Assembly: GCF_000150275.1 (NCBI RefSeq)
Contig: NW_002060946.1
Location: 7,905,494 to 7,969,493, forward strand
Source of the DNA: Trichoplax adhaerens
Lineage: Eukaryota; Animalia; Placozoa
Direction: 5' to 3'
DNA: 64,000 bases
Part shown: piece by piece, positions 3,001 to 52,932 of the stretch
Position numbering within the stretch: position 1 is the first letter of the stretch
Layout: every line of letters starts with the position of its first letter
The notes under the pieces: generated by a model
Database searches by the model: none
The model's input: the letters and a program-made list of their open reading frames with translations, nothing else
What the model was told of the DNA's origin: nothing
Translations under genes and position numbers: made by a program

Positions 3001-4029
3001 TGAGTAAAGGTTGCCGTTATGTATTCTTAGTCAATATGGTACCTATTAGAATCGTTGTCTCACTTTAGGATTGCCTTAATTGAGTTCTTCTATATTTTTA
3101 TTTAAGTCTACTTAAAATCGTAAAAGTGAAATTTTTTCACTGTTATCCTTTCAGATTACCATTCAACTATGTAACTTAATTAGCACTTTTCTTAAATTAC
3201 CAAATATTATTGTGTGGAAACTGAAAATAGTCATCAATTTTTCTACTATTCTATTCTTTGAATAAATTGTAATTTAATATTAGTATATTACTACCTATCG
3301 TAGTAAAGAGTAATAAAAGTACGTTATTATAATTGTATTGAAAAAATTTGTACGTTTCCTAAATTTATTTCATTCCTCTTTCCTTTTCATTTATTTCAGG
3401 TATATAAAATATATTCACATTTATTAATGATGCCGACTTGCTACAGCGTAACGTTTTAGATTTATTCATAGATTAAAAATGATGGAACTAAATAGATAGC
3501 CGTGATAAGGAATAGTAGCTACAATAACAGCCTTCTATAATTTACTGCAGTATATCGCTAATTTATGACTTTCTCGTTACATACAATAATATTATTTCAA
3601 TTATTCAATTTTTTTACATCTATCATATTTCTTACTAAGTAAATAGCTCGATCAAGAAACTGATTATATATATTAGCTATCATTGCTATTAAATTGATTA
3701 CTAAATAATGATATTTCACTTTATTAATTCGGTAATTCTTGTATAAATTGATAATCTAATAATAATATCATCGATCTTTTCAATTTTTCTTCTCCTTAAG
3801 ACGGAAATTGCTCCAATCTTTACCTATTACAATGTACTGGAAAGAAAGGGTAATAATTCATAATCCGATTACCTTCATGTCAAGCTACATCATCAGCCTT
3901 AAAACTCTCCTTGAAAAAGACTAATAAATTTCAATCTAAAGATTTTCATTAAATAGTCGTTCTCACATAACCTCATAACTAAACTATTTCTAGTTGTATC
4001 GTTTAAAGTACTGAAGTCTTTTCATTAAA

Positions 4030-5106
4030 ATGAACAGGTCTTGCAATGATGACAACCTTACGGCACCAATATCTTATGCTGTTACTCTGGGTGTCGCCTA
4101 CGGTGTTATATTTGTATTTGCGGTTATAGGTAATCTCAGTTTAGCCATCGGGATTATTCAAAACTGGAGTAAAATGAAAACACTAATGAATGTGTTAGTG
4201 GTCAATTTAGCTATATGCGATTTGGGATTAGCCATTATTGGCATGCCTTTTACTGCAGTTCATGATATTTACTTATACAATCCCCTTGGCGCTGGATTCT
4301 GTTTTGTATGGTTAATCGCTATGGTTGCATTTTGGTCAGCTAATATGATAACAGTAACGGGAATTGCTATTGAGCGTTTTGTTAAAATTATTCACCCGGA
4401 AAAAGCCAAGCTACAAGCCAAAGGTGGTATTATCTTGGTAATCATATGTTGGATTATATCATTCGGCATGGCTATTCCATACGCACTTGATATTGTTAAT
4501 CATTATGATAATCGCCAAGATCGTATTATATGCTATAATATCCAATCCAATTTGATTGGTCGTCGGGCATTCATCATCTTTGTATTTGTGTTCTTTTTTA
4601 TCGTACCCGTTTTGGTCAATATCATGCTCTATTCCATGATTGTCTATTTCATCTATTCTAAAGCAAATGAATTAAGATCTAGAAGTGAGAATCTGCGCAA
4701 AAGAAATAGTAAAGTAGTTACAATGTTAATGATGGTTGTGGCGTTATTTATATTATGCTGGTTTCCATTTCATTTATCACAATTATTACTGAAATTCGAG
4801 CCACAAACTTTGTGCCCATTAAGTGGTCGAATTTTTATTGCCATTTGTAATTGGCTAGCGTTATCTCATTGTATGGTTAACCCTATCATATTTGCTTCTC
4901 GGAGCGAAATTTATGGTAAGGTAATGGCGGGTGTTTGTAAACGTGGAAAGAACCGAATTCATATTTCGCCATCTGTACTCAATACTGATACGCACTCTGC
5001 TGCTGCTAATAAACAAACCATTAGAAAATATAGCCTTAATGACGATCGAAAAAATCGAATACAACCTGTGAAGTTGCGTCGTTCCGCAACTGTACAGAAA
5101 TTTTAA
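4030..5106 (+). CDS. Intronless rhodopsin-like (class A) GPCR, peptide-receptor-like, 358 aa
   Basis: Seven hydrophobic segments with class A motifs: TM1 GN, TM2 NLAICD, TM3 IAIERF (DRY variant), TM4 W, TM6 CWFPF, TM7 NPIIF; conserved TM3/ECL2 cysteines; N-terminal NxS/T sites. Ligand cannot be assigned from sequence. Confidence 0.92.
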   Translation: MNRSCNDDNLTAPISYAVTLGVAYGVIFVFAVIGNLSLAIGIIQNWSKMKTLMNVLVVNLAICDLGLAIIGMPFTAVHDIYLYNPLGAGFCFVWLIAMVAFWSANMITVTGIAIERFVKIIHPEKAKLQAKGGIILVIICWIISFGMAIPYALDIVNHYDNRQDRIICYNIQSNLIGRRAFIIFVFVFFFIVPVLVNIMLYSMIVYFIYSKANELRSRSENLRKRNSKVVTMLMMVVALFILCWFPFHLSQLLLKFEPQTLCPLSGRIFIAICNWLALSHCMVNPIIFASRSEIYGKVMAGVCKRGKNRIHISPSVLNTDTHSAAANKQTIRKYSLNDDRKNRIQPVKLRRSATVQKF

Positions 5107-11206: not shown

Positions 11207-12172
11207 CTAAAACGGAAGATTAGCTCTGGTAAAGGATGCATTTGCTAATCTAGCTCGATCGTAGACGAATAATCCAACACAAATAATACATACAGTTATG
11301 ATAGAAAACCATGACATGGCGTAGCCAAAGATAATCCAAGCAATCAACGTTGTCATGGATAATTTAATAATCTGAATGAACTGAGTTGATATTCGAGATG
11401 ATTGAAAGAAAGTGATGAAGTGGAGGAGAATCCAGGCAAAGATTAATGTTGCATTCAATATTACTAAGACAGTATAAGATAGGCTGATAACGCTTGATAA
11501 CTTCCATACAATATTGTATTCAAAGAGGATACAATAAACCAAGACGATGCCACAACTAATACGCGTGGTTGCATGAAGTAAGACCAACGAATCGAGCATG
11601 ACTTGATGAGCTAAAGCATTCAATAAAATCAAGCCAACACTGCTGAAGACCACGTAGAGCGCAGTGAATAGAAAGGATGAAAATGAAATTGTTTCTTGAC
11701 TAATAAAGCATAAAATGACACCAGCCATAATGATACCATAGGCAACGTACATGATCGGACTGATACTAGGTGCTCCTTTAATTTGGCGTAGTAGTATGGT
11801 GATCAATGGTATCAATGATGCAAAAGCTTCAATAAATTGTACATTGGCTACCGACAAGGCCAAATATAAGGTAGCACAAATTTGCGCTTGAACAACAGCG
11901 TAAGTTAATATCTGATTATTCACCTTAGAAGGCCAATTGAATTCACTGTCTAAGGATTTACTACTATAAAACTGGCCAAATTTACTATAGCATAGCATCA
12001 CATAGGAAGCCAAACTTACTACAGTTAGTAATACAAAAGTATTAAAAAACGGATAGTGATTGGATGTAATATGCATTAGCCATTTACTGGTGTTGATAAA
12101 TACAACATGGATAAAGACGGATAGCGCCAAGGAGACTTTGGGGCTGTGCTCTAAAGTAGTTAAGCGTTGCAT
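11207..12172 (-). CDS. Intronless SLC35 / triose-phosphate-transporter (DMT superfamily) nucleotide-sugar transporter-like protein, 321 aa
   Basis: About 10 hydrophobic helices; N-terminal 'VFINTSKWLM...YPF' and C-terminal 'IIKLSMTTLIAWIIFG...VGLFVYD' match the SLC35/TPT pattern. Divergent; subfamily not resolvable by eye. Confidence 0.72.
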   Translation of the reverse strand: MQRLTTLEHSPKVSLALSVFIHVVFINTSKWLMHITSNHYPFFNTFVLLTVVSLASYVMLCYSKFGQFYSSKSLDSEFNWPSKVNNQILTYAVVQAQICATLYLALSVANVQFIEAFASLIPLITILLRQIKGAPSISPIMYVAYGIIMAGVILCFISQETISFSSFLFTALYVVFSSVGLILLNALAHQVMLDSLVLLHATTRISCGIVLVYCILFEYNIVWKLSSVISLSYTVLVILNATLIFAWILLHFITFFQSSRISTQFIQIIKLSMTTLIAWIIFGYAMSWFSIITVCIICVGLFVYDRARLANASFTRANLPF

Positions 12173-12639: not shown

Positions 12640-12912
12640 GTACCGTGCATACTTTACGGTACCGAGTAGTCTGTCTGTCTGTCTGTATGATGGGTCTCAC
12701 TTCAGCTTCCAGTCGAGTACAGTACATTGTACGCCCAGTGTACACTGTACAGTGTACAAAACTTCCAGTCTGTACTGTACGGTAAATCATACAATGAAAA
12801 AAAAAAATGATGTTGTTTTGGACTAACATTGAATGTTTGTACATTTAACAAATGTACATTTTGTTGTACAGTACTGTACTAACATCATTTGTCATTGGAG
12901 TACTGTACAGGT
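12640..12912. repeat. GTAC-rich low-complexity cluster (CAGTA/CTGTA/CGGTA pentamers, short (GTCT)n)
   Basis: Dense runs such as gagtacagtacattgtac, gtgtacactgtacagtgtac, ctgtactgtacggta and tgtacagtactgtac, located 0.5-0.75 kb upstream of the SLC35 start. Confidence 0.75.
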
Positions 12913-12967: not shown

Positions 12968-14005
12968 GTCTATTATGCCAACGATGAGTATCAGACATGA
13001 GCCATAGAGCATTGAGCAGGCGTACTACCGGCATGACGGTGACAGTACACTCGTGTCAGACTACCTCAAAGCAGTACAATACACAGAGCGCAGTGACGTT
13101 ACTTACTCTACTCTACTATGCCAACGATGAGTATGAGACATGGGCCATTGAGCATTGAGCAGGCGTACTACCGGCATGACGGTCACAGTACACTAGTGTC
13201 AGACTACCTCAAAGCAGTACAATACACAGAGTGCAGTGACGTTACTTACTCTACTCTACAGTCTCTACTATGCCAACGATGAGTACAGTATGAGACATGA
13301 TCCATTGAGCATTGAGCAGGCGTACTACCGCCATGACGGTCATAGTACACTAGCGTCAGACTACCTCAAAGCAGTACAATACACTGATTGCAGTGACGTT
13401 ACTTACTGTACTCTACAGTCTCTACTATGCCAACGATGAGTACAGTATGAGGCATGAACATTTGAGCATTGAGCAGGCGTACTACCGGCATGACGTTGAC
13501 AGTACACTCGTGTCAGACTACCTCAAAGCAGTACAATAGACATAGTGCAGTGGCGTTACTTACTCTACTCTACTATGCCAACGATGAGTATGAGACATGG
13601 GCCATTGAGCATTGAGCAGGCGTACTACCGGCATGACGGTCACAGTACAGTACTGTACACTAGTGTCAGACTACCTCAAAGCACTACAATACAGTACACA
13701 GAGTACAGTACGTACTGTACAGTGACGTTACTTACTGTACTGTAGTCTACTCTACAGTACTGTAACTACAGTATGCCAACGATGAGTATGAGACATGAGC
13801 CATGGAGCATTGAGCAGGCGTACTACCGCCATGACGGTCATAGTACACTAGCGTCAGACTACCTCAAAGCAGTACAATACACAGAGTGCAGTGACGTTAC
13901 TTACTGTCCTCTACTATGCCAACGATGAGTATGAGACATGAGCCATGGAGCATTGAGCAGGCGTACTACCGCCATGACGGTGACAGTACAGTAGGGTCAG
14001 ACTAC
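12968..14005 (+). repeat. Tandem array of 7 copies (last one partial) of a ~143-bp unit, GC-richer than the background
   Basis: Anchor ATGCCAACGATGAG at 12975, 13118, 13270, 13427, 13575, 13773 and 13916 (spacings 143, 152, 157, 148, 198, 143). Conserved blocks GAGCATTGAGCAGGCGTACTACCG and GTCAGACTACCTCAAAGCA. Confidence 0.97.
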
Positions 14006-14172
14006 TCATCTGTCTCTACTGTACGTCTCTACCTCTGCTTTGTTGAACGACATCGAGTCTTGAAGCACTTTGGCCATTGGTGTGCAGCTGCAATCTTCGC
14101 CATCGTTAAAGCCTTTTCCACTTATTTCCTACTTGATACTGATTTGACGTCGACTATCTTCTGACTATCCCA

Positions 14173-27812: not shown

Positions 27813-28841
27813 ATGCCCACTCCGGATGTCAGTTTTAATAACAAATCAATTCAGTCTATGCCAACCATCCCTACATTGGCAGTACAACTTACTGCTTCGA
27901 TACCATCGGCTATAATCTTCATTTTTGGAATAACTGGCAATCTAGCTATCATCATAACCATGATTCGATATCACAAAACTAAAAGTAAAGAACGTTTCTT
28001 TTGTTTAATTGGCAATCTAGCAGGATACGACATTTTCATTCTACTCTTTTCAATGACCCTTAAAATGACAAATTACTTTATTACTTGGCCTTTTGGATCA
28101 TTTCTATGCCATATCTACAACGGCTTTCAAAGTTACTTTATGGCTGGCTCTGCTATCACAATGACATTTATGGCACTAGAGCATTACCGTGTTGTAATCA
28201 AAGAAGTGAATGCTTATAGCAAAAGTAGCGGAAAAATTATTATTACCGTAGTGATAGCGCTAACAGCATCTATTTGTGCTTGTCCTAGCATTATCTATTC
28301 CAAGTATGTATCTCACTCAGAATCTTCAGTAAAATGCTTCATTCAATTTTTTCAAGATCTTAACCAAGATAAAATAGTATGGCAAACTTATCGAAATTGT
28401 CGTTATGTTATTTTCTATCTCTTTCCACTTATTGTTGTTGTAACAACTTATTTTCAAATGTTACTAACATTGAATCGATATTCAAGGACGTCTTTGGCAG
28501 AATATCATTTAACGAAGGTCAAAGAGCAGAAAAATATCATGAAAATGATTTTATATACCAACGTAACATTTGTCATTTGTTGGACACCTTATTTTATGTA
28601 TGGTTTCATTGTCTATTTCAATCATACGGTTGATGATGGCATACAACTACATCGGCTAATTCGAGTAGCTTGTGAACTAATTGCTTATATCAACAGCGCT
28701 ATTCATCCATTTATCTACGCTAAATATATGCCAATATGTCGACAAGCATTATATCGCCTTTCATGTTTTAGACAATCGCCATCGTCAAATTCAAACTGTG
28801 AATCAAGTACTAGTCACCATGTTACGGTAACCAGTTGCTGA
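27813..28841 (+). CDS. Intronless class A GPCR, 342 aa; distant paralog of the 47.0/51.9 kb receptors
   Basis: 7TM with GN, NLAGYD, TWPFGSFLC, ALEHY (DRY variant), CWTPY and HPFIY (NPxxY variant). TM1 and ECL1 align by eye with the 51895 receptor. Confidence 0.9.
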   Translation: MPTPDVSFNNKSIQSMPTIPTLAVQLTASIPSAIIFIFGITGNLAIIITMIRYHKTKSKERFFCLIGNLAGYDIFILLFSMTLKMTNYFITWPFGSFLCHIYNGFQSYFMAGSAITMTFMALEHYRVVIKEVNAYSKSSGKIIITVVIALTASICACPSIIYSKYVSHSESSVKCFIQFFQDLNQDKIVWQTYRNCRYVIFYLFPLIVVVTTYFQMLLTLNRYSRTSLAEYHLTKVKEQKNIMKMILYTNVTFVICWTPYFMYGFIVYFNHTVDDGIQLHRLIRVACELIAYINSAIHPFIYAKYMPICRQALYRLSCFRQSPSSNSNCESSTSHHVTVTSC

Positions 28842-33009: not shown

Positions 33010-33220
33010 TAGTACGGCTCGGCTCGGTTCGGTACGGTGCGGTATTTACTTGGACAGAGTTGGACTCAGTACAGTACTGTACTGTACAGTACAGTGTACA
33101 GTATAGTATACAACGTAGAGTACATAGTACTGTGGTGCTGTACTGTAAGATACAGTACCATGTTAGTGATCCGGCTGAGACTAGTGGTCTAAATGGTCTG
33201 ATGTGGTCCGGTCCGGACCC
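33010..33220. repeat. Pentamer cluster (CGGNN and CAGTA/CTGTA) immediately upstream of RCC1L
   Basis: tacggctcggctcggttcggtacggtgcggta and cagtacagtactgtactgtacagtacagtgtacagtatagta, plus ggtccggtccggacc, located 150-370 nt 5' of the RCC1L ATG. Confidence 0.8.
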
Positions 33221-34504: not shown

Positions 34505-35386
34505 TACTGTATAATCACATACTTTGCTCTAGATAAATGAATATATATGTTACGTATGTTATGTATACATATCCATTTATAATACGTGCATTGTTACTAA
34601 GTTTGATTATGGTACAATAACTATACTAACTTCTAAAGCAAATTATAATAGCAGCCTAGACAAATAAAAATAGGTAGCATAGATGTACATGAATTGAGTT
34701 TATCTTGAAAATATCTACATATGCCTTCTCCATCATCATAACTGCTTTCCGATGAATATTTTTAGCCGTTAATCACCACGGAAGGACTTAAAATGATGAT
34801 AATATATCAGTACACAATATTTCTTTTATTGGCAGAATGATCTAATTCCGATGTCAGCTATGTGGTAGTTACCTATAGTAATTACCGGATTTCAACTAAT
34901 TCCATCATTGTTTTTGCTATACTACGCGTTCTTACTGAATTGTCACCTGAATGCCAATATACACCATGCAGTGGGCATGTGATTATTCAAATAATTTGAA
35001 TAATTTTTATTATTGCGTAAGAGGGAGCCGTTAACCCAATAAAAGATGCCATGAATAATTAATTAACTTTGCTAATCAATTGCTTTTTCAACTCCTTGTT
35101 ACGATAGGCTGTAGTTACAAGTAACGTGAAAGTTATGTGAACTAGCCAGTTGTAACTTGTAACTGTGCCTAGTAGTAATCGAAATTTTACTTTCTTCGAC
35201 AAGGCACGAACTTTAAAGGTCATTTTACTACATATAATTCTTTTAAGATATTGCTTCAACTATTCAAAACCATCTATAATTATGATAACGTGAAGAAATG
35301 AAACAACAATAATGTTGACGTCAATTATTCCCACTGTAATGTGATAGCTGATATTGCTATCAAAACTTCTACAGACAACGCCAGCA

Positions 35387-38300
35387 ATGAACGTCAAAAT
35401 CAAAAACAGAAGTCAACATGCGATCGCCAATGAAAATTTTAATAATGGTAACTACCAAGCTGCACTTACATTGTACATGCAAATACTGGAGGACTGTCGC
35501 AAAGTTGATCATCAAATCGACAAGGCAACCCAAGCAGATCTATGTAATGCCAACTTAAATGTTGCCAAAGCCCACTGTATGCTTTATCATAGCCAACAAG
35601 CAAATCACTTTTGTTGCCAATCACATCAATTAGCTAAGCAATTAACCGATAATCACTTAATAGTAGCCGAATGCCATGATTGCTCTGGTGATATTAAAAG
35701 ACTGGCTGGTCGATATTGTGAAGCATTGGTAGAATATCAAGAATCGTTTAGTACTAGAATTAGCGTCAAAGGAGAAGACAATCCGAGTACGGCAAAGTCA
35801 TTTAACAAAATTGGTAAAATACTTTATTTACAACAAAAATATAATGAATCTCTTCACATGCAGCAAAAAGCACGTAATATTTTATTACTACAAGTAGATA
35901 ACAACAATATTCCAAACATCGATATTGCCGAAGTTTATTCCGATATTGGAATGGTTTACATGTCACAAGGAAATTTATTAGATGCAAGCATTCTATTTGA
36001 GAAATCGTTACTCGTTATTATTAAAATATTAGGAGAGAATAATCTACGAGTAGCGGATATATATAATAAACTTGGTTCGGTTTATTTAATGCAAAATCAA
36101 TTAGAAGAAGCTACAGCTATGTTTAAAAAAGCTACTAATATAATTAATGAGATAATCGGTCTGAATACTTTAGAAGCAGCTACGACTTTTAATAACTTTG
36201 CTAGAATTCAACTAGCGCAAGGCAAATACGACGAAGCCGAATTAATGTGCTCAAAATCTTTGAGTATACAAATAGTACGATTAGGGAATAATCATTTAAA
36301 AATCGCAGAAACCTATACAACTCTAAGCCAAGTGTATAAAGGAGTCAAGAAATACAATGAAGCAATAGATGCCCTACAAAAAGTCATAAACATGCAGCGT
36401 ATGATATTAGGCGATAGGCACTTGATCATTGCAGAATCTTACTTTAATATAGGTGAAATTTACGACTTACAAGCCAGCTATGACGATTCGCTATTATTTT
36501 ATCAAGTATGTTTAAAAATTCGACTAGAAATTAGTGGGGATATGGATGAAAATGTGGCCAAAACCTATCATCGTATCGGATTAGCCCAGTTCTCACTAGG
36601 AGAATATAACAATGCTCTAAATCACTATCATCATGGATTACGATGCTATCTAGAAATGATTGGATTTCAGAATTTAACTGTAGCTTCATTACTTAATGAT
36701 CTTGGATTTGCTAATCAAAAGTTAGAAAATTATAACGAAGCAATTAGCGTTCATTCTCAAGCTATATCCATACAACGGCGATTGCTGGGTCAATGCAATT
36801 CATCTTTAGCTTCATCATATAATAGCATTGCAATAGCTTATCAACTGAATGGCAACTTTAACCAAGCTATATGCATGCTACAGAAAAAATTAAAAATTCA
36901 GTTAGTATTACTGGGAAAGAACGATACAAAAATTGCTAATACATACAGCAATCTCGGATCGTTATATCAACTACAAGGTAAATATGTTGATGCATTAGTT
37001 ATGTATAAAAAGTGTAAAAAAATTCTACTCAAAGTCTTGGGTAATAACAATATAGATTTAGCAGAATCACACCGTAATATAGGATTCATTTACATACTAC
37101 AAGGTCGATATGACGATGCAATGTCATTACTTAGGCAAAGTTTACAAATTTATTATGAAAAACTAGGCCAAAATGATTTAGAAGTAGTTAAAGTGTATGA
37201 GAATATCGGATCAATATACAATTGCCAAAGAGATTTCAGTAGCGCATTAGGAGCCTACCGGAAATGTTTAGCAATAAAGCTAACGCTGTTAGGAAATAGT
37301 CATTTTGATTTAGCGGTGACTTATAGCGATATTGCTTCTATTTATTATTCAATTGCTCAATTCGATCAAGCTCTAGATTCTTATGAGAAATGTTTAAAAA
37401 TTCAAGAAAACCATCTTGGTCTCGATCATTTACAAGTAGCAACAACATATTATAATATTGGAAAGATATATTATCTACAAAACAAGCAAGATACCGCTTT
37501 AGCTATGTATAACAAGTGTAAAAATATCCAACTGAAAAGTCTTGGCGAAAAAAATCCTACCATTGCTAAATTATATATCAGCATAGGATTAGTACATGTA
37601 TCGAAAGAGCAATATGAAGATGCTATGTTGTTATATCAGAAAGGATTAGCAATTCAAATAAAATATTTGGGTAGTAATAATTCGCAGACTGCATCGACTT
37701 TATCAAATATAGCATCAGTCTACAAAGCTCAAAATAAATTTGATGACGCTATATCTTTATATAACAATTGTATTTCTATCGAAGAAGAATTATCGGGTGA
37801 TCATCATGGATGCATGATAATATTATATCAAAATTTGGCCTCAACCTATGAATCATGCGATAAATTAGACGATGCAATCAAGGCATATCACAAATGTTTA
37901 AATATTCAACAACACCTATTTGGAGAAAATAGTCTCCACGTCGCTTCCACATTTAATGATATTGCTTCCATTTACGTCAAGCAAAGCAAGCACAACGATG
38001 CAGCATTTCAATGTGAAGAAAGTATTAAGATACTTAATAAAGCTCTTGGAGATAAGAGTCTACTAGTTGTAACTATGTATAATAAATTAGCAAATATTTA
38101 TGCAGAACAAGGGCACATAGATAAGGCTTTAACCACATTACATCAGAGTCTGGACATCTTTCTAGCACTTCGAAAAGAAAAAAGCTCCAAAAATGAAACT
38201 ATTTTATTTCGAGACGCCTTAGAATGCAAACAACAATTTAAATGTTTTGATCAGATGTCATTATTACAAAAGACCGTCGATATTCAACAGAATTTTTTGG

Positions 38301-38800
38301 GTGACTACAATTCACTTGTTTCTATGTCAAATCATAACTCTGGAAGCACATACCTAGCAGCAGATAGATTAGATGATGCATTAAAAATTTGCAACAAATG
38401 CTTAAAAATTCAACGGCAAATTCTTGATGACAACCATCCCGCTTTAGCTAAAACCTATTATAAGCTGGGGATAATTTATCTACAACAGGACAATCATAAG
38501 GATGCTCTGAGCATGTTTCAGCTATCTATTGATATCCAAAATAGAAATGATGACGATAACGATGCTCTGTTAGCCAATTGTTATCAAAGCATTGCTTCGA
38601 TCTATAAGCTAAGCGGTAATAAAACTTCAGCAATCATGATGTACGATAAATGTTTAAACATTCAGAAAACTCTATTTGGAGAAAGTTATCCAAATATTTC
38701 CGAAATTTGTCAAGAGCTGAATGAAATCGCTATAACCGACTCGCGTAAGTTCTACAATATTGAAAAAATAATTAGCCCACAATGTGAATTTTATGTGTAG
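35387..38800 (+). CDS. Single-exon tetratricopeptide-repeat protein with about 24 42-aa (kinesin-light-chain/TPR_12-type) repeats
   Basis: Uninterrupted ORF (open from 35354, first ATG 35387) with recurring consensus LGxNxxxVAxxYxNIGxIYxxQxKYDDALxxYxKCLxIQ. No recognisable non-TPR domain. Confidence 0.9.
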   Translation: MNVKIKNRSQHAIANENFNNGNYQAALTLYMQILEDCRKVDHQIDKATQADLCNANLNVAKAHCMLYHSQQANHFCCQSHQLAKQLTDNHLIVAECHDCSGDIKRLAGRYCEALVEYQESFSTRISVKGEDNPSTAKSFNKIGKILYLQQKYNESLHMQQKARNILLLQVDNNNIPNIDIAEVYSDIGMVYMSQGNLLDASILFEKSLLVIIKILGENNLRVADIYNKLGSVYLMQNQLEEATAMFKKATNIINEIIGLNTLEAATTFNNFARIQLAQGKYDEAELMCSKSLSIQIVRLGNNHLKIAETYTTLSQVYKGVKKYNEAIDALQKVINMQRMILGDRHLIIAESYFNIGEIYDLQASYDDSLLFYQVCLKIRLEISGDMDENVAKTYHRIGLAQFSLGEYNNALNHYHHGLRCYLEMIGFQNLTVASLLNDLGFANQKLENYNEAISVHSQAISIQRRLLGQCNSSLASSYNSIAIAYQLNGNFNQAICMLQKKLKIQLVLLGKNDTKIANTYSNLGSLYQLQGKYVDALVMYKKCKKILLKVLGNNNIDLAESHRNIGFIYILQGRYDDAMSLLRQSLQIYYEKLGQNDLEVVKVYENIGSIYNCQRDFSSALGAYRKCLAIKLTLLGNSHFDLAVTYSDIASIYYSIAQFDQALDSYEKCLKIQENHLGLDHLQVATTYYNIGKIYYLQNKQDTALAMYNKCKNIQLKSLGEKNPTIAKLYISIGLVHVSKEQYEDAMLLYQKGLAIQIKYLGSNNSQTASTLSNIASVYKAQNKFDDAISLYNNCISIEEELSGDHHGCMIILYQNLASTYESCDKLDDAIKAYHKCLNIQQHLFGENSLHVASTFNDIASIYVKQSKHNDAAFQCEESIKILNKALGDKSLLVVTMYNKLANIYAEQGHIDKALTTLHQSLDIFLALRKEKSSKNETILFRDALECKQQFKCFDQMSLLQKTVDIQQNFLGDYNSLVSMSNHNSGSTYLAADRLDDALKICNKCLKIQRQILDDNHPALAKTYYKLGIIYLQQDNHKDALSMFQLSIDIQNRNDDDNDALLANCYQSIASIYKLSGNKTSAIMMYDKCLNIQKTLFGESYPNISEICQELNEIAITDSRKFYNIEKIISPQCEFYV

Positions 38801-47000: not shown

Positions 47001-48040
47001 ATGTCAGCCAATAATATCCAACTCAGCAATGAAACAAACCATCAACTGGTATCGCTATTAGGACTTCGACTTATTGTCGGTATACCTTCAGTTATTATTT
47101 TTATCGGTGGTTTGATTGGAAATATATCTACTGTATTTACTATCATTCGATACAGAAGAACGACAACCAAAGATCTCATGTTCTACTTAGTTGCTAATTT
47201 AGCAATGTATGATATTCTTGTCATGTTATTTGCTTTACCAATTACAGTTATCCGAAAATTAGCTTTCACATGGCCGTTTGGAGCTTTCCTGTGTTATACT
47301 ATAAATGGTTTCCCTCCTTTCTCGGGAATAGGCTCAGTAGTAACCATGGTTTCTATAGCAATCGATCGCTACTATGTCGTTTTACATGCAGCAAATCCAA
47401 ATCCAAAAGAGAAGAAAAAGGGGCTAATTCTTTCAGCAATATTTATAACAGCGCTAGCCGTTGCTTCACCAGCATTTATATTTTCAAAATATGATGACTC
47501 TCAATCAACTCCTTATTGCGATATTGTTTTTTCTACTGATTCTGCCGTTCAAATTATCGGATGGCGAATTTATATTACATTATCGAGTATTCTGATTTTA
47601 TTTCTACCAGTTACGGTCGAATTAATCATATATGTCAAGATTTTACTGGTTTTACGGCAAAGATCGAAAAATATTACAACCCGATTCAATTATGCATATG
47701 TTAAAGCTCATAAGAATACCATCAAATTGATGTTGTTAATGACTATTACTTACATTTTTACCCATGCTCCACTATTTATTTGCTATCTTATATATCATTA
47801 TCAAGGTATATCAACCGAAAATGTTATACTATTTTAACTCATATTTGTTATCGCACATTTTTATGTTTTTATTCTAAAAGTTTAATTAACCCTATAATTT
47901 ACACTGGCTTTATTCCTAAACAAAAAGAGCGACATATTTATATATTTAGCTTTCAATTTTTAAGGCCTTGTCTGTCGAAGAATTGTAGCTTGAATTTCAA
48001 ACGAAATGCTGTTGCTCCTAAAACCATCTCGACGACATAG
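47001..48040 (+). pseudogene. Class A GPCR pseudogene, close paralog of 51895-52932
   Basis: Relative to the paralog: CAA>TAA nonsense at 47835-47837 and a 2-nt T insertion about 20 nt later (CATTTA>CATTTTTA) that moves TM7 (KSLINPIIY) into another frame ending at 48040. Confidence 0.85.
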
Positions 48041-51894: not shown

Positions 51895-52932
51895 ATGTCA
51901 TCCAACCATATTAGACTCAGCAATGAAACAAACCATCAACTGGTATCGCTATTAGGACTTCGACTTATTGTCGGTATACCTTCAGTTATTATTTTTATCG
52001 GTGGTTTGATTGGAAATATATCTACTGTATTTACTATCATTCGATACAGAAGAACGACAACCAAAGATCTCATGTTCTACTTAGTTGCTAATTTAGCAAT
52101 GTATGATATTCTTGTCATGTTATTTGCTTTACCAATTACAGTTATCCGAAAATTAGCTTTCACATGGCCGTTTGGAGCTTTCCTGTGTTATACTATAAAT
52201 GGTTTCCCTCCTTTCTCGGGAATAGGCTCAGTAGTAACGATGATTTCTATAGTAATCGATCGCTACTATGTCGTTTTACATGCAGCAAATCCAAATCCAA
52301 AAGAGAAGCAAAAGGGACTAATTCTTTTAGCTTTATTCATAATAGCATTAGCCATTGCTTCACCAGCATTTATATTTTCAAAATATGACGATTCTCAATC
52401 AACTCCTTATTGCGACATGGTTTTTTCTACTGATCCTGCTATTCAAATTATGTGGAGACGAATTTATGTTACCTTAGTCAGTGTTTTGATTTTATTTCTA
52501 CCAGTTACGTTCGAAGTAGTCTTATATGTCAAAATTTTACTGGTTTTACGACAAAGATTGAAAAGTCCTACAGCTCGATTCAATTATGCATATGTTAAAG
52601 CTCATAAGAATACCATCAAATTGATGCTGTTAATGACTATATTATACGCAACTACTCATACACCGCTGTTTACTTGCTACCTAGTCTATCGTTATGGAGG
52701 TGTAGCGCCCGAAAATGTTTTAGTATTTCAACTTGTATACATCATCGCGCATTTATGTTTCTATTGCAAAAGTGTCATTAATCCTATAATTTACACTGGC
52801 TTTATTCCAGAACATAAGCAGTGGCTACTTTGCATAATTAATTTCAAATTTATACGGCCTCGCTTGTCAAGTACAAGTATCTTAAAATTCCGGAAAAATA
52901 AATGTACTATTGCTCCAGTATCAGCCTCATGA
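51895..52932 (+). CDS. Intronless class A GPCR, 345 aa
   Basis: 7TM with GN, NLAMYD, TWPFGAFLC, IDRY and TM7 NPIIY; atypical TM6 (THTP in place of CWxP). Confidence 0.92.
   Translation: MSSNHIRLSNETNHQLVSLLGLRLIVGIPSVIIFIGGLIGNISTVFTIIRYRRTTTKDLMFYLVANLAMYDILVMLFALPITVIRKLAFTWPFGAFLCYTINGFPPFSGIGSVVTMISIVIDRYYVVLHAANPNPKEKQKGLILLALFIIALAIASPAFIFSKYDDSQSTPYCDMVFSTDPAIQIMWRRIYVTLVSVLILFLPVTFEVVLYVKILLVLRQRLKSPTARFNYAYVKAHKNTIKLMLLMTILYATTHTPLFTCYLVYRYGGVAPENVLVFQLVYIIAHLCFYCKSVINPIIYTGFIPEHKQWLLCIINFKFIRPRLSSTSILKFRKNKCTIAPVSAS

Follow-up and report, generated by a model that had tools for sequence, protein, structure and literature searches.

In the genome of Trichoplax adhaerens, we found that the copies of a tandem array differ by insertions of a five-nucleotide unit, CWGTA (W = A or T), at TA dinucleotides, that isolated units with TA at both ends are in large excess genome-wide, and that the central letter of neighbouring units is set almost at random. 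The best explanation for the 5-nt differences between the copies of the array, albeit not a proven one, is that they are scars of the repeated excision of a Tc1/pogo-type element, a reading to which we assign a probability of roughly 45%. A broader proposition is put forward more tentatively: the dominant microsatellite of this genome and its promoter arrays might together constitute ~10^5 Tc1-type scars of transposons that have since been lost, scars that may have been co-opted and may still be forming via an unrecognised low-copy element.

Pentamer insertions in the array

The window, i.e., the whole stretch of 64,000 nucleotides that was analysed (G+C ~31%), contains an array of seven units, whose lengths from u1 to u7 are 143, 152, 157, 148, 198, 143 and 111 (partial) nt when anchored on ATGCCAACGATGAG. 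It lies between a minus-strand ORF (11207–12172) and a plus-strand ATG at ~14183, and therefore occupies a divergent intergenic region. Common substitutions define a 3-unit higher-order pattern (u1~u4, u2~u5, u3~u6), and a genome-wide search found no further copy of the 143-bp unit outside the array. The array and the pentamer units in and around it are as follows (positions in the window; only the array is assigned a strand, with the method in brackets where one applies):

12975–14026, plus strand: tandem array of seven ~143-bp units, the last one partial (anchoring on ATGCCAACGATGAG, MAFFT)
12715–12910: unit cluster in unique sequence just upstream of the array (at 12718, 12773, 12867–12878 and 12901)
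13284–13290: TACAGTA in u3, +5 at GAG-TA-TGA, absent from five of the seven units (MAFFT)
13441–13447: TACAGTA in u4, +5, identical in site and orientation to that of u3 (MAFFT)
13646–13657: TACAGTACTGTA in u5, two units, +10 at CACAG-TA-CAC, a 12-nt perfect palindrome (MAFFT, unit removal)
13690–13696: TACAGTA in u5, +5 at CAA-TA-CAC (MAFFT)
13704–13719: TACAGTA-CG-TACTGTA in u5, +14, GAGT(G>A)CAG, where sister units have GAGTGCAG; two canonical units plus a 4-nt non-canonical piece (MAFFT, unit removal)
13733–13744: u5 tail, TACTGTACTGTA, a gain of 10 nt where tails of the u1/u2 type have ACTTACTCTA; a C>G substitution at this place in u3 and u6 leaves the parse ambiguous (unit removal)
13753–13764: u5 tail, TACAGTACTGTA, a gain of 10 nt and a further A, at CTC-TA-CTA (unit removal)
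13767–13773: TACAGTA spanning the u5/u6 junction, +5 at the junction TA, CTAC-TA-TGCC (unit removal)
33067–33157: second promoter-type cluster with a five-unit core, central letters A T T A A

A preliminary description of this DNA had listed the array insertions, stating that nearly all length variation between copies was of this type and that copy 5 had gained its 55 nt mostly in this way. Re-reading of the window bore out its coordinates and sequences, and the seven units aligned with MAFFT indeed differ almost solely by CWGTA inserted at TA. As for copy 5, we carried out a unit removal, deleting every C[AT]GTA directly after a TA: ten units came out of u5, reducing it from 198 to 148 nt, so that canonical units make up 50 of its 55 additional nucleotides. 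All ten fit TA+CWGTA, with more than one parse possible in the u5 tail. The stripped u5 differs from u2 by 2 mismatches, a 4-nt extra (TACGTA versus TG) and an 8–9-nt duplication of u2's own. Since u3 and u4 are not higher-order homologues yet have a common +5, this insertion reflects either two separate hits on one TA or gene conversion from a neighbouring unit. Two other kinds of change were also seen, namely the 9-nt AGTCTCTAC duplication in u2/u3, which is of a different type from the CWGTA insertions, and the origin of at least two of the array's TACWGTA heptamers by substitution (CTCTA>CTGTA common to u3/u5/u6; ACACT>ACAGT in u7). In the window as a whole, TACWGTA occurs 73 times as against 14.0 ± 4.1 in dinucleotide shuffles, with none of 100 shuffles reaching 73.

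A second array, unrelated to the first and 120 bp long, lies at the locus L020 and has GAATAGAG in two of its units and GAATACTGTAGAG in a third; its single 5-nt indel lies at a TA (GAA-TA-GAG) without resemblance to the motif. The insertions are derived relative to the paralogous copies, and two independent arrays support the birth of units at TA without a local template. Further, unit density is 0.36 per kb in long ORFs versus 1.71 per kb elsewhere, as expected of insertions that shift the reading frame.

We also compared the window with assembled contigs of four public runs from two organisms, covering 5.9 kb that lie partly within the repeat and differ from the window by ~0.5% in unique sequence. 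One contig of organism B (run X8; 182 nt over 197 reference nt) lacks exactly 5 nt at 13690, among 17 gap letters in total across u5; in the flanking 5 kb, with its ~ten isolated units, the four-run contigs show no such indel. Over these 5.9 kb, none of the contigs carries an element at a scar position, the only such difference being the 5-nt presence/absence at 13690. This points to a recent change in the densest cluster and to at least one u5 unit being polymorphic between close lineages, and is suggestive only, because the contigs were assembled in a repeat. Exact-protein look-ups with three window proteins, for orthologous DNA of other strains, found nothing on record.

TA anchoring and orientation of the units

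We then counted the unit in a 280 kb sample, which comprises the window, 200 kb of contig C1411 and five small loci. As the sample statistics rest on one contig plus the window, whole-genome pattern counts were added from the assembly of 105,631,681 bases in 1,414 contigs. First, TACWGTA is the sole outlier among the 32 TA-NNN-TA families of the sample (429 versus 63 expected, 6.8×), the next being its own centre variant TACSGTA (2.3×). Second, among maximal period-5 fragments of length 7 in the same sample, an excess is seen only in the T-start phase (177 versus 67), with the other phases at expectation. Third, after masking 200 bp around each run of at least 9 nt, TACWGTA remains at 134 versus 44 expected (3.06×) and ranks first among the 64 W-centred palindromic heptamers (median 0.96); the four non-TA phases in the masked sample, ACWGTAC, CWGTACW, WGTACWG and GTACWGT, are at expectation, together ~1.1× (observed/expected 24/20, 53/46, 46/44 and 27/19.5). 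Fourth, exact 7-nt fragments were counted across the whole genome, with flanking letters chosen so that the pattern could not run on and with the reversed pattern as a control; this gave 60,534 versus 15,263 for HTACWGTAD (4.0×), in contrast to 8,135 versus 6,144 for VACWGTACS (A/G phases; 1.32×) and 32,244 versus 23,169 for BCWGTACWH (C/W phases; 1.39×). The genome-wide excess of TA-anchored CWGTA anticipated in the preliminary description is hence present, at 4.0× versus 1.3–1.4× for the other phases, and amounts to ~45,000 excess isolated units with TA at both ends. As in an excision footprint, the target is TA and both flanks are TA.

Two further origins of the isolated heptamers were considered and discarded. 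Debris of decayed or contracted microsatellite runs would be expected in all phases, and was therefore rejected given that the other four phases are without a comparable excess. A splice-signal or codon origin was dropped by reasoning: it would be expected to show strand bias and would not need a flanking TA pair. By our own estimate from the 280 kb counts, units that deviate at one position (TACSGTA, xACWGTA, TACWGTx) are modestly over-represented, which suggests a mean unit age of several percent substitutions per site.

This anchoring bears on a self-propagating, hairpin-prone pentanucleotide, (GTACW)n, as a source of the units without any transposon. As GTAC is self-complementary, a strand of such repeats would fold with W·W mismatches and slippage would add units; template switching or quasi-palindrome correction would flip A and T; and stalled forks would seed nearby copies by templated repair. 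Such a process leaves unexplained both the enrichment of isolated units in the TA...TA form only and the births at plain TA without an adjacent template, such as that at GAA-TA-GAG in L020, and the six separate TA sites hit in u5 are beyond what slippage could seed. We regard the hairpin-prone repeat as somewhat unlikely, with the points in its favour coming from the longer runs and the clusters, to which we turn below.

Runs of three units (TACWGTACWGTACWGTA) occur 12,137 times per strand genome-wide versus 2 for the reversed control; they are short in unit, tandem and abundant, as a microsatellite is. The central letters of these triples are, genome-wide, as follows: AAA 2,094 and TTT 2,227 (sum 4,321); ATA 991 and TAT 1,032 (sum 2,023); AAT 1,523 and ATT 1,532 (sum 3,055); and TAA+TTA 2,738 for the remainder. 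Of the pairs of neighbouring units, 59.5% have the same orientation, and the triple counts can be described by a first-order chain. The runs are (GTACW)n with W set almost at random, rather than (ACAGT)n. The A/T centre and its near-random choice agree with a footprint, in which a mismatched pair of overhangs would decide the letter afresh every time. The mixture favours the hairpin-prone repeat in one respect, the excess of same-orientation neighbours, and goes against it in another: palindromic neighbour pairs are a minority (40%), so correction to perfect palindromes is not dominant. Flipping of units by point mutation was rejected, as substitution would give G/C transitions at least as often as A<>T transversions, while C or G at the middle position was seen 430 times (3.4% of the genome-wide three-unit runs), ~5× more rarely than the 2,023 middle-unit flips. 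Separately, we observed that the palindromic junctions in three-unit runs are slightly asymmetric, with AAT+ATT at 3,055 versus TAA+TTA at 2,738.

Clustering, promoters and the missing donor

The units are strongly clustered. Ten of the ~12 array insertions fall in u5, one of seven near-identical copies: ten units at six TA sites there, versus ~two in the other six copies, has a probability of ~1e-6 under equal rates by our own estimate. Of the u5 TA sites, 8 have no hit, 2 have one and 4 have two, which is roughly what a Yule process would give at a high local rate. Chains of at least two units number 38 versus ~1 expected under a uniform Poisson/Yule model (~30-fold, with the expectation being our own estimate), and unit counts per kb have a variance of 9.5 at a mean of 1.55. 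The units are thus not a product of independent events with nesting by chance re-hits. The concentration in u5, the excess of chains and the over-dispersion therefore mean that the footprint model needs extra assumptions: targeting of promoters or accessible DNA, local hopping, or slippage. To our knowledge, Tc1/Sleeping Beauty elements are neither promoter-targeted nor hyper-local. The clusters are 100–200 bp long, which would fit the targeting of nucleosome-free promoter DNA. The start phases of runs of at least 12 nt (T13, A8, C7, W19, G8) show no visible TA bounding, and the base preceding a chain of at least two units is G in 65% of cases; decayed edge units could account for the absence of TA bounding in the long runs.

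Two observations on the sequence of the clusters may be recorded here. A recurrent 7-nt variant, GTAC-AGT-GTAC (TACAGTGTACAG), is seen at 33090–33103 of the window and at L012:890–905, with 6 occurrences in 264 kb, and may represent a non-canonical unit lengthened by 2 bases. At L012:190–205 and 685–700, the words TTGGCGCGC and TTGGCGCCAATGG adjoin a 1-kb field of pentamer clusters, and may be a separate promoter or loop-anchor motif.

The local and self-reinforcing character of the clusters is what the hairpin-prone pentanucleotide would produce, as is the near-uniform phase of the long runs. The polymorphism in the densest cluster next to the stability of the isolated units in the flanking 5 kb also fits it, and it makes a donor element unnecessary. 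Moreover, the repeat is already known as the dominant microsatellite of the Trichoplax adhaerens genome, (ACAGT)n (Wang et al. 2010, Biol Direct 5:18, PMC2871265). On the other hand, the hairpin mechanism offers no reason for the abundance of the motif in placozoans only.

The position of the clusters raises another alternative, namely that TACWGTA is a cis-regulatory word—the site of a dimeric factor or an initiator-like promoter code—whose abundance and whose arrays at housekeeping promoters would be due to selection rather than to mutation bias, with the array insertions being incidental. In the window, the clusters lie at two housekeeping-type intergenic regions (12.7–14.0 kb and 33.07–33.16 kb), and none is found upstream of four plus-strand intronless ORFs for rhodopsin-type GPCRs (4030–5106, 27813–28841, 47001–47837 and 51895–52932). 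Genome-wide, 54% of the ACAGT loci are found upstream of a gene at a distance of no more than 1 kb, and genes for ribosomal proteins and kinases are enriched among these (PMC2871265), and a recent preprint with a Hi-C/Micro-C sequence model picked the ACAGT repeat among the Trichoplax motifs associated with chromatin structure. A heptameric site also predicts enrichment in the TA...TA form only. However, selection does not itself make new sequence, and a selected motif should arise mostly by point mutation, whereas ~twelve units arose by exact 5-nt insertion and ~two by substitution; ~45,000 excess isolated units, together with equally spaced nested runs, are also many for a factor site. Our search of the literature found no functional assay of the repeat. 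Taken as the origin of the units, a regulatory word thus appears improbable. Elsewhere in the window, we noted a 1,148-aa ORF (35354–38800) made up almost wholly of TPR_12/TPR_10 repeats.

For excision scars, the reading that we favour, a donor element might be expected. The CAG of the inserted units matches the termini of Sleeping Beauty. Within the 280 kb sample, the candidate TA|CAG...CTG|TA pairs were all artefacts composed of the pentamer, and none had genuine TIRs. Profile matches in the genome comprise four HTH_Tnp_Tc3_2 and one DDE_3, with no match to the mariner-type Transposase_1, and we found no convincing TIRs around the five Tc1-like loci. One ORF stands out:

L001:895–1971 (= G000:C1409:3537595–3538671): intact 358-aa ORF with HTH_28 and a weak DDE_3 match (33.7 bits)

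This ORF has no flanking TIRs and no PDB match by sequence search; it may be a domesticated or low-copy Tc1-like transposase. Of the DD34E/DD34D transposase or CAG-ended element that the preliminary description had proposed to look for, the genome offers Tc1-like remnants, without TIRs and, within the 280 kb, without a TA|CAG...CTG|TA element. In the same sample, neither the 8-nt fill-in footprint TACAGCTGTA (1 versus 2 in the reverse-order control) nor the 4-nt Tc1-type footprints are enriched. An earlier survey of T. adhaerens reported 11 mariner/Tc1 fragments, none of them active, three complete single-copy mariner/Tc1 ORFs, and a TE content of 0.13% with no active element (PMC2871265). A low-copy element whose excision far outpaces its decay would leave many scars and few fossils, and the missing donor therefore weakens the footprint model rather than refuting it. 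Separately, L005:2153–2467 carries nested imperfect inverted repeats of 41–49 nt with GGCGCGCC, beside several pentamer units, and might represent either a small element of the MITE kind or a TIR of Mutator type.

A recent change in u5 would be hard to square with an extinct element. It raises the alternative of an endogenous TA-specific enzyme that still makes units at open promoters, a candidate for which would be a domesticated single-copy Tc1-like transposase (e.g., the L001 ORF), perhaps with a few unrecognised mini-elements. The u5 polymorphism suggests a recent process of this kind, and both the intact HTH_28+DDE_3 ORF without TIRs and the three complete single-copy ORFs of the 2010 survey (PMC2871265) might supply the enzyme. 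However, with a weak DDE_3 match and no match to a solved structure, catalysis by the L001 product is putative, and a transposase without transposon ends provides no source for the constant CAG. We give this alternative little credence.

Returning to excision scars, we picture a TA-specific insertion process that would convert TA to TA-C(A/T)G-TA, each event making a second TA open to a further hit. Its most likely source would be a cut-and-paste element of the Tc1/pogo type that inserted and excised time and again, its termini reading CAG and its cut being staggered by 3 nt. The donor site would retain two CAG 3′ overhangs, which could pair with a central A·A mismatch, and repair or replication would then set the centre to A or T at random. 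Over a long period, ~10^5 scars would have accumulated in a genome now nearly without transposons—isolated ones everywhere outside coding sequence, and dense 100–200-bp clusters at constitutively open promoters—with ordinary slippage later adding some same-orientation copies. Three parts of this picture are inferred: that there was such a transposon, that it preferred promoter DNA, and that it has been lost or now persists in very few copies. Without extra assumptions, the model yields the TA anchoring, the constant CWG, the random A/T centre and the 5-nt gain, as well as nesting via the new TA and depletion from coding sequence. The preliminary description had claimed serial insertion/excision scars and had held that simple slippage explains them poorly. 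The second point holds, as slippage explains neither the TA anchoring, nor the constant CWG, nor the random A/T centre; in the first, the TA-anchored, randomly oriented and derived units stand, while no donor was found and the clustering and nesting go beyond independent insertion.

The overabundance of ACAGT in Trichoplax has been unexplained since 2010 and has lately been tied to chromatin structure. If the units are indeed scars, a nearly transposon-free genome would hold a hidden record of intense cut-and-paste activity, in which footprints seed microsatellites and perhaps promoter architecture. Such scars would offer a measure of past transposition where the elements themselves have vanished, and the promoters of placozoans would naturally chart where transposons choose to insert. 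Should the transposon reading prove wrong, a TA-anchored, randomly oriented unit excludes plain slippage and points to a specific mutational mechanism.

Comparison with known systems

The closest counterpart of the unit is the footprint of Sleeping Beauty and other Tc1-like elements, TAC(A/T)GTA, in which the three terminal bases of the element are left between two TAs (PMC6943129). The preliminary description had identified the array heptamers with this footprint, and they are literally the published canonical forms, TACAGTA and TACTGTA: the heptamers, the TA flanks and the 5-nt gain at TA are all shared, as is a centre equally likely to be A or T. The differences lie in the setting. In the known cases, the element is present and its scars are sparse and scattered, whereas here a cognate element was not found and the scars are nested and gathered in 100–200-bp promoter clusters.

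Mutagenesis by template switching at quasi-palindromes drives sequences towards perfect palindromes and requires an existing repeat. Like hairpin-forming microsatellites of this kind, (GTACW)n is self-complementary except at W, and its changes are confined to W. Unlike in quasi-palindrome mutagenesis, non-palindromic neighbours are the majority here and units arise at plain TA.

Within placozoans, Mutator elements are reported to reside in promoters where expression is high, and a part in regulation has been suggested for them (Kim et al. 2025, Nature, PMC12221973); promoter targeting by a DNA transposon thus has a precedent in this group. These are likewise DNA-transposon sequence concentrated in promoters; in contrast to the present case, in which only 5-nt units remain, they are recognisable elements with TIRs and a different motif.

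Finally, there is the (ACAGT)n microsatellite itself, whose identity with the inserted units the preliminary description had overlooked. The pentamer, its overabundance and its position upstream of genes are shared, and the clusters of the window together with the inserted units are instances of it. Slippage, in which new units copy an adjacent unit and have no fixed phase, does not describe what we observed. The 2010 study tallied perfect repeats, regarding them as a microsatellite and possibly as a site bound by a factor (PMC2871265); it makes no mention of a near-random mixture of ACAGT and ACTGT, isolated units bounded by TA, births at TA, or excision footprints. In the literature at large, we found no paper that connects the Trichoplax ACAGT repeat with footprints or describes its anchoring on TA or its mixed orientation. 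As a sequence feature, the repeat is known; its TA anchoring, the random orientation of its units and their birth at plain TA appear to be new.
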